From positions 1,091,563 to 1,117,007 of the forward strand of contig JAWQFM010000020.1 of NCBI GenBank assembly GCA_033442325.1: a DNA stretch of 25,445 nucleotides, given 5' to 3'. Position numbers and translations under genes: made by a program. Origin of the DNA: Salpingoeca rosetta. Lineage: Eukaryota; Protista; Choanoflagellata. This document shows positions 735 to 5,782 of this stretch, in pieces; positions within the stretch are counted from its first letter, which is position 1; the number at the start of each line of letters is the position of its first letter. The notes beneath the pieces are model-generated. The model ran no database searches and was not told where the DNA came from. It worked only from the letters and a program-made list of their open reading frames with translations.

Positions 735-2623
735 ATGCGAGGTGGTTCTGTGCTCACCACCTTGTTCGCTGCTTTGGCAGTGGTGTGGCTGGGGCTGGGT
801 GATATTGAGGGTGTGGAGGCCGGCAGGCTCAGGGTGTACGCAAAGAGCGCCGAGGTCAGCGTATCGATCACGAATATCTTAGCTGGGGGGTTGAATGTGG
901 CTGCTAGGCTTCAAGTCGAAGGGGTCACAAGCTTCATCGAAACGCGACGGGTCGGGACCAACCACCCAACATGGAACCAATGGCTGGACTTTGGACGAAC
1001 AGACATTGGTCCCTCGGTCAGTGTTCTCAAGCGAGTATTCATTGGTGTACACCGGCTCAAAGATGTACATACATCCACAAGCGGAGTCAACACATATTAT
1101 TGTTCGCTGTCTTGTCACGTTACATTGCTTGAACCTCACAGTGTCGCATATTTGCACTGCTGTTCTGCGCAATTCATTGTTTTTGTTCTACAGGGGACGG
1201 TGCGGGCGCAAGTGGTCAACTACGACAACGGCGGGGGACTTGATGTGGTAAGCATCATGCTAGTCCGTGGTCTACATACACATTTATTCCAGATGTGCTT
1301 TCGTGCTTCCCCAAAGACATTTACATATGGCTTCAGTACTTACATTTGCGCACGTGTCGTTCGTTCGTATCACAGCGTGTCCAAGACAGGTTCAGCTTCT
1401 CGTTCAGCGGATGCAGCAAGCAAACGCGGTCCTTTCGTCTGACCAAAGAACTCTACCGGAGTGGTCCATTCGGCATGTCCATCTACATTGGCACCTCCAT
1501 CTTTGACTTTACCCTCGAGTACACCCCAAGTAAGCACCAGCAATGTGCTGATTGATACCTTGATACTGTATTTGTCCTGCGAGAAAGACACCCCTTGCCC
1601 GCGTCATCTTTCATCTGTTCCTTTCCTCACGCTCTCACGCGCACTCCACCTCCCCTCAACCCCTCCAACAGCCAACCTGTGCTCCACGTCCTATTGCGAT
1701 GCGACCTCGACCACGTGCTCCTGCCGCTCCGACAACAGCGCAACGTGCGTCACTGATGTTGTACCACCGCGACCACCGAGCCACGCGGTTGCTCACTTCC
1801 GATGTTTGTGCACGCTTCCCTGTTTTCTTTGTCACCTTCAACCTCCACCAAACCCCCAACCCCCAAACATGTCCATCAACCACCCTCCTCTCCCAATCCC
1901 TTGCAGGTGCTCCTGCAAGAGCGGGTACACGTACCTTGATGCCCAGCGCTGCCAAGAACGCAACATCTGCACCAACAACGTCAAAGGTTGCGACCTCTCC
2001 TCCACCACGTGAGTTGACCATGTGAGAGGGAGGACAGGAGAGCAAAGGAGGGTTGACTCGCATGCATTGTGCTGTCCAACAGCGCGACGCGACGCGATTG
2101 CCTCTTATGCCGTGGCACCCGTCGCACCATCCTCGTCCACACACCCCTCCCCTGTACTTCACCACCACCATCCCCCCTTTTCCTTCTCTCTGCTTTGACA
2201 ACAGGTGCCGCAAGACGGGTCCAGGCACGGCCGAGTGCGACTGCAAGGCCGGCTACCGCCGCAGGACCTCTACCTCATGTGCCGCCATCAACCCGTGCAG
2301 TGACAACCCCAACATCTGTGGCAGCAACTCCCAGTGCTCCATGACGGGACCAGGCACGTACAGATGCACGTGCGAGGATGGCTACTCCTCGTCTACAGCC
2401 GACAACAAGAACTGCAGGCCCATCGACAGGTGTGAACTGAACACGGACACATGCGACGGCAACAACACCATCTGCGAATACCTGGGACCAAACAGGTTCA
2501 AGTGCACGCCATGTCCAGACGGCCACAAGGCGACGGACGACGAGTGCAAGCAGATCAACCCCTGCATGGACAACGAAGGCATCTGCGGTGACAACGCGAC
2601 TTGTGAATTTGCCGGACGTAAGT

Positions 2624-2658
<35 letters not shown>

Positions 2659-4181
2659 CGTGTGCGTGTGTACATCAAAGCTGTGCATCCATTTTCATCG
2701 CACCTCATCTCACATGATTCCATCCGTATCGACTGTTTCCTCTGCTCTTTATCCCCCACGTCCCATGGTACAGCTGGCAAGTACGCGTGCCTGTGCGCGA
2801 GTGGATACGAGCACGACTCGCCCACAGACAAGTGCACGCCTATCAACTTTTGCGAACAGACACCAGGCCCTTGCGGCGACAACTCCAAGTGCTCTCCAAC
2901 AGGTGCTGTTTGTGTGTGTGCATGCGTGCGTCAGAGAGAGAGTGTGTGTATGTGGTGTATGTTTGTGCGTGCAGGTGGAAACGTGTCTGGTTCATCCCAA
3001 GCTTGATCCACACTCTCGATTCCACACTCTCGTCTCCTCGCTGCTGTCTCACCCTCATCTGCCTGCTTCCCCTTGCCCCTGCAGGTCCCGGCACATACAC
3101 GTGCCAGTGTGAGCAAGGGTACGAGTCCGATGACAATGCCCAGACGGTGAGTCGCACCATACCTTCCCCTAACGCATCTGCAACCACGCCGACCTCGAGA
3201 CACACACACACACACACACACTCTGTCACTCACCACGCACACACATACACACACACACAATGTTCATCCACAGAACTGCTCGCCCATCAACCGGTGCGAC
3301 ACGAACAACGGCGGGTGTGGTTCCAAGTCCCAATGCGATCACACGGGACCAGGCACGCGCAGGTGCACGTGCGACGCTGGCTACAGAAGCACCTCCAACG
3401 ACGGAGCAAACTGTGTGGTGGGTTCACGGTGCAGCTGTTGAGTGGCAGCTGTCATGTGCATGTGCGTGTACACTTGTGCTCCATCGCTCATTGTTGTTGC
3501 CTCTCGTCCCAACAACACTGCTCCTTGCATGACATGCGTTCACCCTTCGCACTTACACCCACCACCACCACCACTATCAACATTACAGGAGATTGACCCG
3601 TGTGTCACCGACAACGGAGGCTGCGGCGATGCAAGCACCACCCTGTGTGTAAAATGTGATGTGGTGCCTTGTGCTCCATCATTATTGTTGTGCTTGCAGC
3701 ATGCCAGCTTCTTTTGTGGCGCTTCCACTTGCACACCACCACCTGCCGTTCCCCTCACCATCACCATCACTCCAACACACCATCTGCTCCTGTGCTCCGC
3801 CATCTCTTCGCTGCAGGTGCACCAAGACGGGCCCGAACGAGCGCGAGTGCAGCTGCAGGGACGGATTCACGTCGGAGACGGGGCGCGACTGCATCTGGAT
3901 CAACCCATGCGTCAACGAGGACTACGGCGGCTGTCTGCAAGCAACAGAGATGTGAGCCTGTGTCTTGTTGTGCTGTTGTGTGCGTTGTATGCGTGTGTGT
4001 AGGCGTACATTGCATCTGCGCGTTCATCACCACCGATGTTGCTTGGCATTGCACCCCACCTGACTTTCGCACGCTTCCATCCTTCACCTCCACAACAACA
4101 GCTGCATGAACACGGGCCCCAATGAGAACAAGTGTGACTGCCGCACCGGCTTTCAGTTTGACGAAGAGACCGGACACTGCC

Positions 4182-4226
<45 letters not shown>

Positions 4227-4540
4227 GTTGGAGTTCTTGTGACACTGGCGTACATCATGTTGTTTCCCCAGACACATCACTGCACTGCAATGCATCTCTC
4301 AACTGCGCGCGCTCACGCATCAGCATTCTCTCCTCCTCTCGCTCCTCTCCTCACTCCTCCCCCTCCCACCACCGCCACCACCCAAAGTGCGGTGAGCGGC
4401 CGGCGTGCCCAGAGTTTTCGGCGTGTCAGGACTCTTCATGCGTGTGCGAAGGGGGTTTGCGGTTGGTGGAGACAGACGTGGGTGACTTAGCCTGTGCCCC
4501 AACAACAACAACAACCACCACCACCACCACCACCACCACC

Positions 4541-4586
<46 letters not shown>

Positions 4587-5782
4587 CCACAACCACCACT
4601 ACAACCACCACCTCTGCGTCCCCCATCGTTGTCATCACGACACCCTACACTGCGGCAGCAGGAACAACCACAACGACAAGCACAACCACGGCTGGCACCA
4701 CGACCGGTCGTGATATGCAACCACAGCCCACCTCCACCACGTCCACCTCTGCCGTGTTCACCATTGCGCCTCCGAATCGCCAGCGATCATCCACGTCATC
4801 TGCTGCAAATCCCGTTGTCATTGGTGCTGGTGCTGGTGGTGCACTCGTCGGGTGTGCACTCCTCATTATTGTTGTTGTCCTCTTTGTTCGACGTCGCCGC
4901 CGTGACCACCACGACGGACATCGCGACACGACAACTTCGGTGCCGCCGTCTCGTGCACCCACGGATGGCGGGGCTGTCCCCTCGTCGTTGTCGAGCATGT
5001 CAACCACCAACCCGCTGTTTGTTGGCGACGCCATGATGGAGCCAGCAAGCATGCAGCCAGCCTGGCTGCCCGAGGAGGAGGCAACCGCGTTTGATCTTGA
5101 TCCCAGGAACCACTACGACAACCTGTATGAAGATGATGTGGTGGACGAAGCTGACAACTACTACGAAAGCGTTCAGCCTGCTGATGACCAGGACAGGTAT
5201 TTGACGCCAGGCCAATCCAAGCTGTACGCCCCAGCATATCGTGTCCCGAACGTGATGGATGGTGGCGGTCCAACACAACACACCCACGACAGGGATCGGG
5301 GCTACGAGCAGCCTGCATCGACGCAGCAGCACTACTACGATCGTCCGCAGCCCGACGACGACAGCAACAACAACAGCAACAGCAACAGCAGCAGCCATGA
5401 CCATGAGCATGAATACCACCACTACGATTTTGTTGCGGCGCAACCAGAGTACGAGAACCCTGGCGCCATCTACGATATCGCCAGCGATCCTGTTCAAGTG
5501 CAGGGCGGGCAGGTCATGGATGATTACGCGCAGCTGCACGTCCCCTTTGCAACAAATGTAGCGACACAGCGCGAGCAGGGACGACGGCCACAGTCCAATG
5601 CTGTGTACGATGTGGCGTCCCCGTCTGCCCTCCTTGAACAACCCACTCATCACCACCAGCACCATCTGTATGAGCTTGGCAGCGATACAGGTGTTGACCC
5701 AGCAGCTCACAACGGTCTCCCCTCCACCGACCAGTCTGACCTCGCACCTGTCTACGACGTTGCGAGCGACTCACATGCATAA
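735..5782 (+). CDS. Type I membrane receptor-like protein (~1026 aa): signal peptide, C2-like domain, ~10 EGF repeats, Thr-rich mucin stalk, TM helix, Tyr-rich cytoplasmic tail
   Basis: 13 exons with GT-AG boundaries and consistent phase: 735-1016, 1194-1247, 1376-1529, 1672-1744, 1907-2008, 2205-2617, 2774-2902, 3085-3146, 3274-3417, 3589-3644, 3817-3951, 4102-4183, 4388-5782 (3081 nt). Hydrophobic N-terminus LTTLFAALAVVWLGLG; NHPTWNQWLDFG motif; repeated INPC..NNGGC...C..TGPG...C.C..GY EGF units; poly-Thr; TM VVIGAGAGGALVGCALLIIVVVLFV followed by RRRRR. Confidence 0.9.
4502..4612 (+). repeat. Coding (ACA/ACC)n trinucleotide repeat encoding the poly-Thr mucin-like stalk
   Basis: Seen directly; in frame within the last exon of the receptor. 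Confidence 0.95.

Follow-up and report, generated by a model that had tools for sequence, protein, structure and literature searches.

A gene of the choanoflagellate Salpingoeca rosetta codes for a membrane protein which carries a C2 head outside the cell. The gene is found in positions 735–5782 of the plus strand in a window of 25,445 nt of contig JAWQFM010000020.1; the window is the whole stretch of DNA that we have analysed, and positions without a contig name refer to it. The protein has 1026 amino acids and the layout of a type I membrane protein: an outward C2 head, a rod of EGF modules, a mucin-like stalk and a tail with many tyrosines and an NPxF motif but no kinase are united in a single chain. 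It belongs to a family of four genes in this species. We consider that these proteins are probably receptors which have no kinase, cross the membrane once and signal through their tyrosine tails; we would give this reading a probability of about 0.6. The architecture has already been published for two of the four genes. What is new is the loss of Ca2+ ligands in the window copy, and the homogenisation of the stalks in genes which have diverged heads.

The predicted signal peptide (residues 1–29, positions 735–821, start codon included) has its hydropathy peak in residues 3–25 and should be cleaved after VEA, before GRLRV. It is followed by a Cys-poor domain of about 134 amino acids (residues 30–163). 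Residues 164–600 form ten EGF-like modules with 61 Cys, in whose exons we have found matches to the Pfam families EGF_3, FXa_inhibition and cEGF. The first of these modules contains seven Cys, which do not follow the DSL pattern. The stalk comes next (residues 601–702, positions 4502–4807 in the translation), with 37 consecutive Thr (4502–4612) and then a stretch rich in Thr, Ser and Ala. The transmembrane (TM) helix, in residues 705–729 (4814–4888), is the top hydropathy window, with a mean of 2.9; it precedes the sequence RRRRR. According to the hydropathy scan this helix and the signal peptide are the only hydrophobic segments. The cytoplasmic tail (residues 730–1026, positions 4889–5782 with the stop codon) has 297 residues. 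The motif count gives 18 Tyr, one NPLF (5009–5020), five YxxP, two YxN and four Y[DE][IVL][AG]S; Pfam found neither a kinase nor any other domain in the exons of the tail.

An earlier reading of this DNA from its letters alone, which we will call the original prediction, had placed here an extracellular domain followed by about ten EGF modules and a TM helix. This agrees with what we have found, and the peptides quoted in it are all present in the sequence, from the start that it gave. Its limits, 735–4500, were right at the beginning but not at the end: the TM helix and the tail lie beyond 4500, and the gene continues to 5782.

The N-terminal domain and its relatives

The N-terminal domain is almost certainly a C2 homologue. 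Sequence comparison demonstrates the homology of exons 1 and 2, whereas the last third of the domain, coded by exon 3, probably completes the same fold. When 1.84 billion representative sequences were searched exhaustively by phmmer with exon 1, ten matches were obtained, of which four are real (P0001, P0002, P0003 and P0006, from eukaryote assemblies in ENA/Logan), with E values from 8.6e-8 to 1.4e-4. The stretches matched in these four proteins are Pfam C2 domains by themselves, with E values from 1e-30 to 1e-48. Exon 1 can be aligned with every C2 repeat of the four relatives, and exon 2 of the window's paralogues is colinear just behind. The other six matches (P0004, P0005 and P0007–P0010) were dropped: they are sums of weak matches to internal or unrelated repeats.

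Other comparisons give the same result. When an alignment of exon 1 from three paralogues is compared by hhalign with 13 astacin-linked Pfam C2 domains, a probability of 98.5% is obtained (E 1.6e-15, 60 columns). Both groups have in common a GRLR[VI]YA start, the motif NPTWNQW[LI]DFG in strand 4 and FD[FY] in the terminal strand. Exon 1 of the paralogue found in contig C26 matches by itself positions 1–59 of the PF00168 profile with 19.9 bits (E 9e-4), for a cut-off of 22. A model of the exon 1 fragment (66 amino acids, alignment of 16 rows) has a pLDDT of 82 and shows four strands in C2 order; its best 50 rows in Foldseek are all C2 domains. For the complete domain we have used as a structural proxy the nearest contiguous relative, P0001:880–996, which is not the window protein itself. 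In a full-domain local alignment exon 3 is colinear with strands 6–8 of this proxy, including the terminal FDF/FDY strand, with an insertion of 12–16 residues.

Some results count against the assignment. Pfam finds no C2 match in window exons 1 and 3, scanned as single exons; the exon 3 profile has no significant match with the astacin C2 domains; and the Foldseek E values of the exon 1 fragment, a very short query, are not significant (0.098 or worse). Two word-index searches for a database copy of the spliced protein, one with exon 1 and the other with a stop-free stretch spanning an EGF exon of a paralogue, gave nothing.

In the fragment model loop 1 of the window copy (ITNILAG, residues 45–51) forms a short helix, with modest confidence. 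It recalls the C2 domain of cPLA2, in which loop 1 is helical and inserts into the membrane.

The four relatives are built in a different way. P0001, P0002 and P0006 are of the secreted type and have an astacin protease with 3–4 Pfam C2 domains; P0003 has three C2 domains with EGF and no astacin domain. In P0001 and P0003 the EGF modules are interleaved with the C2 domains. These astacin-(C2-EGF)n proteins are the only real matches of window exon 1 in the whole library, and they share with the window family an extracellular C2 domain directly flanked by EGF modules. However, they are soluble metalloproteases with the full Asp cluster, without TM helix or tyrosine tail, and their identity with the window protein over exon 1 is about 30–35%. 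The term "C2 domain" does not appear in a 2023 review of astacin architectures. A further eukaryotic secreted protease of this astacin-C2 kind is P0011 (L009:2001–4991, in an ENA contig of 366 kb), whose gene has no introns and adjoins TRAF/MATH genes.

The original prediction compared the head with the C2 domain of perforin. The C2 part of this claim stands on the evidence given above (phmmer 8.6e-8, hhalign 98.5%). The perforin part has indirect structural support, through the proxy, but no affinity in sequence. The model of the proxy is a sandwich of eight strands with a pLDDT of 94.7. In Foldseek the C2 domain of perforin comes first (5UG6 and 4Y1S, E 2e-7, TM score 0.77–0.78) and that of cPLA2 next (4.6e-7). 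VIA-align places perforin and fish perforin-like entries in ranks 1–7, with Z values of 15.2–15.9 and a root-mean-square deviation of 1.5–1.7 Å; the C2B domain of E-Syt, cPLA2 and the C2B domain of Munc13 follow with Z values of 14.9–15.2. The difference is smaller than one Z unit, so that by the rule of VIA-align itself perforin is tied with E-Syt, cPLA2 and Munc13. When PDB was searched by sequence, perforin was absent from the 40 rows with E up to 10 obtained with the profile of three paralogues, and also from the best 60 rows of two further profiles. The best matches of the profiles are ferlins, synaptotagmins and PKC. The resemblance stated in the original prediction is therefore not confirmed by sequence statistics. 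Neither these searches nor the scan for MACPF, which has no Pfam match on any window exon, give evidence of a specific relationship with perforin.

The topology of the domain can be predicted from its sequence. The mature protein starts at the second strand of the topology I order and has an extra terminal strand; therefore it should have topology II, as found in perforin and cPLA2. It would be a type II C2 domain whose closest solved look-alike is that of perforin, by a thin margin which was measured on the proxy. The C2 domain of perforin (PDB 4Y1S, 4Y1T and 3NSJ; 3W56/3W57 in fish) is also extracellular and adjacent to EGF, and topology II with the extra terminal strand would be common to both. 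A further likeness is found in the paralogues, whose loops carry Asp and aromatic residues. The window protein differs from perforin in that it lacks MACPF.

The family in S. rosetta: different heads on a common stalk

The original prediction asked for paralogues with a signal peptide, C2, EGF and TM helix. In the genome of S. rosetta (assembly of 55.4 Mb in 68 contigs) we have found three further members of the family, with paralogue matches of E 1e-20 and 9e-19. They are situated at C26:~1004936, C16:~1207419 and C16:~1202951; the last one stands in tandem with the other gene in C16 and lies 4.5 kb upstream of it. In all four genes the introns split the C2 domain at the same positions into three exons. 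Each of the proteins also has a mucin stalk, a TM helix with an NPx[FY] motif a short distance behind it, and a tail rich in tyrosine. The C26 paralogue has conserved the VEAGR cleavage junction. The core C2 motifs GRLRVYAKS, PTWNQWLDFGR and FDFTLEYTP are invariant in the three copies which have EGF modules. The generic C2 profile also matched contigs C12, C9 and C3, which we have rejected on the evidence of their C2 sequences: they seem to contain ordinary C2 genes with the classic SDPYV-type sequence and without the signature motifs of the family. Contig C12 has several C2-like frames.

Two of these genes have been described before. Shigeno-Nakazawa et al. 2016 (Sci Rep 6:34349, Fig. 6; PMC5043372) have drawn PTSG_12435 and PTSG_12436 as C2(-EGF)-TM-YxxP proteins. 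The tail peptides given in their supplement (YDTPRH, EYDLPR and YDNPR; DEYDYP, DEQQYDVPR and EYAVPR) occur in the translations of the C16 loci, which are therefore PTSG_12436 (C16:1207419) and PTSG_12435. That paper names neither the window gene nor the C26 gene, and our literature search found no further mention of PTSG_12435 or PTSG_12436 in other papers. Both proteins have the same parts as the window copy: signal peptide, N-terminal C2, EGF-like region, mucin stalk, TM helix and a tyrosine tail with YxxP and NPx[FY]. Compared with PTSG_12436, the identity of the window copy amounts to 57% for the C2 domain and to 88–100% for the nucleotides of the EGF exons. However, the window gene is found in a different contig, it has lost three Ca2+-ligand Asp and its tail is similar to that of the C26 paralogue (85% of nucleotides) and not to that of PTSG_12436. 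PTSG_12435 is more distant: there is just one Cys-rich module, and the identity of the C2 domain to the other three is no higher than 28–33%. The end of its tail, GFGFE..DLNV, resembles GFGFDDDMDV in PTSG_12436. The window gene is thus a further member of a family with a published architecture, partly degenerate and poor in Ca2+ ligands.

The loss of ligands is clearly apparent when the loops are compared. The paralogues (C26 and the two genes of C16) keep four or five of the five Asp which bind Ca2+, in a cluster with aromatic residues on its flanks: D..SDxD in loop 1 and WDxD...D in loop 3. In the window copy the ligand positions are occupied by T46/N47, N54 and N103, and only D105 and D111 are retained. 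Loop 3 reads VVNYDNGGGLD in place of WDxD...D. The loops of this copy are still hydrophobic (I, L, L, Y).

The window branch is also the longest in the family: dN is 0.36–0.38 for its pairs and 0.175 between C26 and C16. A relative-rate check with PTSG_12435 as outgroup does not decide the matter: the identity of the window copy is 28%, versus 31–33% for the others. The dN/dS values in the C2 region, 0.47–0.67 for the window pairs and 0.34 for C26–C16, indicate that the head is under purifying selection.

A peculiarity of the family is the contrast between head and stalk, which we have studied in a three-way genomic alignment of the window, C26 and C16. The C2 exons have a nucleotide identity of 59–75% with the window copy and of 65–82% between C26 and C16. 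Introns 1 and 2 cannot be aligned (about 50% identity), with the exception of intron 1 between C26 and C16, which has 77%. From exon 4 to intron 12 the situation is completely different: almost all exons and most introns are 87–100% identical, in a mosaic pattern from which five introns depart, with a drop to 66–81% in some pairs. The window and C16 are 100% identical over 3589–3951, including intron 10; the window and C26 have 95% identity in intron 12; C26 and C16 have 97% in introns 3 and 5. The mosaic (1672–4387) ends at the boundary between C2 and EGF. Since its tracts of 95–100% identity include introns, it points to non-allelic gene conversion among copies which lie in three contigs. 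The alignment thus demonstrates, at the level of sequence, a concerted evolution of the EGF stalks, homogenised by gene conversion, under C2 heads which are old and individually conserved, about 57% identical. The contrast is due to conversion of the stalk. We have rejected a head that evolves faster than neutral: divergence is greater in introns 1 and 2 than in the C2 exons, and the dN/dS values lie under 1.

The poly-Thr tract of the stalk is coded by (ACA/ACC)n. Its 37 residues in the window copy become a much longer and interrupted tract in the paralogues, so that the length of the stalk differs between copies.

Possible function and alternatives

We propose the following mechanism for these receptors. 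A C2 sandwich of type II, similar to those of perforin and cPLA2, would be held at the outer tip of a rigid rod made up of ten EGF modules and an O-glycosylated poly-Thr stalk. A disordered cytoplasmic tail would carry one NPxF and many tyrosine motifs (YxxP, YxN). With the tips of loops 1 and 3 the head would touch a membrane or a lipid surface, be it of prey bacteria, of vesicles or of another cell, and this engagement would lead to clustering of the proteins. Cytoplasmic tyrosine kinases could then phosphorylate the tails, which would attract SH2/PTB adaptors such as Crk and thus promote actin-based uptake or adhesion. It is known that YxxP phosphopeptides modelled on PTSG_05573, another membrane protein of S. 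rosetta, bind the SH2 domain of Crk from M. brevicollis (PMC5043372). The window head is predicted to act independently of a canonical Ca2+ bridge, or with a shifted ligand, since three of its five ligand Asp have been replaced and its loops remain hydrophobic.

A more daring proposal, which we regard as rather improbable, is that the four proteins are surface sensors of bacterial membrane lipids. Their targets would be the membranes of prey, or cues borne by vesicles, for example the sulfonolipids and lysophospholipids which control rosette development; the diverged heads, one of them poor in Ca2+ ligands, would have different lipid specificities, with a common stalk kept uniform through gene conversion and a phosphotyrosine/Crk output. 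If this were true, a perforin-type extracellular C2 domain flanked by EGF would predate animals, and it could be the source pool of the perforin C2 domain.

To our knowledge C2 domains are seldom extracellular, and those which are known to be so, in perforin and in the Notch ligands, are central to animal immunity and development. The family shows that the closest unicellular relatives of animals possess proteins in which an EGF stalk carries a C2 head and the tail is of phosphotyrosine type. It provides four candidate genes for the way in which choanoflagellates recognise bacterial membranes and lipid cues, in an organism which is genetically tractable. Diverged heads on a constant stalk, together with a natural variant poor in Ca2+ ligands, are built-in comparisons for binding. 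The significance of these points is tempered by the previous publication of the architecture for two of the paralogues.

The receptor reading has to be weighed against other explanations. The one which survives best, possible but clearly less probable, is a passive adhesion or glycocalyx protein: the C2 domain would bind protein or glycan, the EGF and mucin regions would be a spacer or coat, and the tail would serve for endocytic sorting only. NPxF is also an endocytosis signal, the poly-Thr mucin region is long and the window copy has lost Ca2+ ligands. Furthermore, a C2 domain can be a protein-interaction module; the C2A domain of Munc13 and the complex of Nedd4 C2 with Grb10 are found among the structural neighbours. 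On the other hand, the tail has 18 Tyr with repeated YxxP, YxN and Y[DE][IVL][AG]S motifs, kept in kind across the paralogues, and in the heads of the paralogues we still find the Asp cluster with its flanking aromatic residues, which is typical of C2 loops that insert into membranes.

Some features of the window copy itself tell against a working receptor: it lacks three canonical Ca2+-ligand Asp and keeps two of five, which weakens the case for lipid sensing by this copy; it has the longest branch; and the RNA depth on exons 1–3, its specific N-terminal exons, is low, about 1–10x. It could then be a weakly used, drifting paralogue, whose C2 head has lost its function and which is kept intact mainly by gene conversion of the stalk. 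The highest dN/dS values of the family (0.47–0.67) and the mosaic of EGF exons and introns, 87–100% identical to the paralogues, would also fit. We find this unlikely: the frame of 1026 codons is intact, the splice sites are canonical and used, dN/dS remains below 1, and the core C2 motifs are invariant in the three EGF-bearing copies.

The original prediction also offered a proto-Delta-like architecture, that is, an ancestral molecule similar to the Notch ligands, which would signal in trans through the C2 domain and the first Cys-rich modules. Delta, Serrate and Jagged do have the same order of parts: a signal peptide, an N-terminal extracellular C2 domain, Cys-rich modules, an EGF array and a single TM helix. 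Furthermore, their N-terminal C2 domain binds lipid (PMC3888931). Nevertheless we consider this origin very improbable and the claim was not borne out. MNNL and DSL (PF07657 and PF01414) have no match on exons 1, 3, 4 and 5 with E up to 1, nor on the paralogue exons with E up to 10; the remark in the original prediction that neither DSL nor MACPF is visible agrees with our Pfam scan of the exons. Among the 50 structures which best match the proxy there is no C2 domain of Jagged or DLL, and the nearest relatives in sequence are the astacin-linked C2 domains. The tail is of receptor type (NPLF, five YxxP, 18 Tyr), different from that of the Notch ligands, and the EGF modules are of the EGF_3/cEGF type. 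The parallel with the Notch ligands is one of layout only.

For the kinase-less receptor which we favour, the nearest working analogy may be found instead in engulfment or adhesion receptors of the CED-1/Draper kind. CED-1, Draper and MEGF10 have an ectodomain rich in EGF, a single TM helix and a tail without kinase, with NPx[YF] and tyrosine motifs, as in the window protein. They differ in the head, which is here a C2 domain; EMI was not found on the window exons. It is proposed as an analogy only.

Finally, it is hardly credible that the N-terminal domain is not C2 and that its similarity is due to chance: the window exons lack a Pfam match to C2 and the profile of three paralogues obtained nothing better than E 0.13 in PDB, but this best, weak match is itself a C2 domain (PI3K-alpha), in the whole library the matches (8.6e-8 to 1.4e-4) occur only in proteins which have C2 domains and involve each C2 repeat, hhalign gives 98.5% and the fragment model matches only C2 domains.

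Gene structure and expression

The window gene is expressed and its exons 1–5 are spliced together. According to the spliced gene model it has 13 exons, with its ATG at 735, a reading frame open over 1026 codons and the stop codon at 5780–5782. Its 12 introns are all GT..AG, with lengths of 127–204 nt. Short GT-AG introns and (GT)n/(CA)n runs are found in the window DNA, which has a G+C content of 55%.

Expression was studied with two stranded RNA-seq runs and a set of RNA contigs. Eight joints are seen in RNA, all of them GT..AG: 1016|1194, 1247|1376, 1529|1672, 1744|1907, 2008|2205, 3417|3589, 3644|3817 and 3951|4102. The third, fourth and fifth of them join exons 1–3 to the EGF exons in the messenger, a point on which the original prediction depended. 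For the other joins there are only loose ends or paralogue-like reads, and 4183|4388 is not directly seen in the RNA-seq reads. The strand of the library agrees with a messenger from the plus strand, and the RNA coverage begins at or before 700. RNA contigs without mismatches cover 788–1015 and 1408–1529 and continue across the joints; these regions are only 59–75% identical to the paralogues, so that the contigs are specific to the window gene. The many variant letters in the EGF exons correspond to cross-mapped reads of the paralogues.

The C2 domain is distributed in the first three exons. Exon 1 (735–1016) codes for the signal peptide, followed by GRLRVYAKSAE...NHPTWNQWLDFGRTDIGPS; its C2 part (822–1016, residues 30–94) contains strands 1–4 and loop 1. 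Exon 2 (1194–1247, residues 95–112) has the translation GTVRAQVVNYDNGGGLDV and contains strand 5 and loop 3; both of its joints are among those seen in RNA. The C-terminal third of the domain is in exon 3 (1376–1529, residues 113–163 plus 1 nt), which ends with FDFTLEYTP and has its RNA joint at 1529|1672.

Exons 4 and 5, with RNA joints on both sides, contain an atypical first module, Cys-rich and EGF-like, which starts in exon 4 (1672–1744) and ends in exon 5 (1907–2008), where EGF 2 begins; exon 5 has a weak Pfam cEGF match. The largest EGF exon is number 6 (2205–2617), with EGF 2–5, four stretches of Pfam EGF_3 (E 3.1e-11) and 93–95% nucleotide identity to the paralogues. Exons 7 (2774–2902, EGF 5–6) and 8 (3085–3146, EGF 6) come from the gene model: the join 2617|2774 is found only in paralogue-like reads and loose ends, and at 3082 and 3146 there are loose ends which agree with the adjoining exons. 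Exon 9 (3274–3417) codes for EGF 7, with matches to FXa_inhibition (E 1.3e-7) and EGF_3 (E 6.6e-6), and is joined in RNA to exon 10 (3589–3644). The latter contains the start of EGF 8, is 100% identical to the C16 paralogue and has a second RNA joint, 3644|3817. Exon 11 (3817–3951, EGF 8–9) also has RNA joints and a cEGF match with E 3.1e-4; exon 12 (4102–4183, EGF 9), joined to it at 3951|4102, has an EGF_3 match with E 0.0049. The AG acceptor at 4386–4387 preserves the frame into exon 13 (4388–5782), which starts with EGF-like module 10 (4388–4501), with six Cys in CGERPAC...LACAP, and contains the rest of the protein.

Several introns have particular features. Intron 1 (1017–1193) has 177 nt, a multiple of three, and no stop in frame; as a result exon 1, intron 1 and exon 2 form a single open frame (561–1442). 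If it were retained, C2 strands 4 and 5 would be separated by an insert of 59 residues; the RNA data showed no reads which suggest this. Long (GT)n runs are found directly after donor sites, in positions 2625–2670, 2905–2960, 3190–3264 and 4183–4226, and (CA)n-rich runs elsewhere in the introns. Upstream of the receptor gene there is a gene for tRNA-Arg (anticodon CCG) in the same strand, in positions 514–588 of the window, about 147 nt before the start codon.

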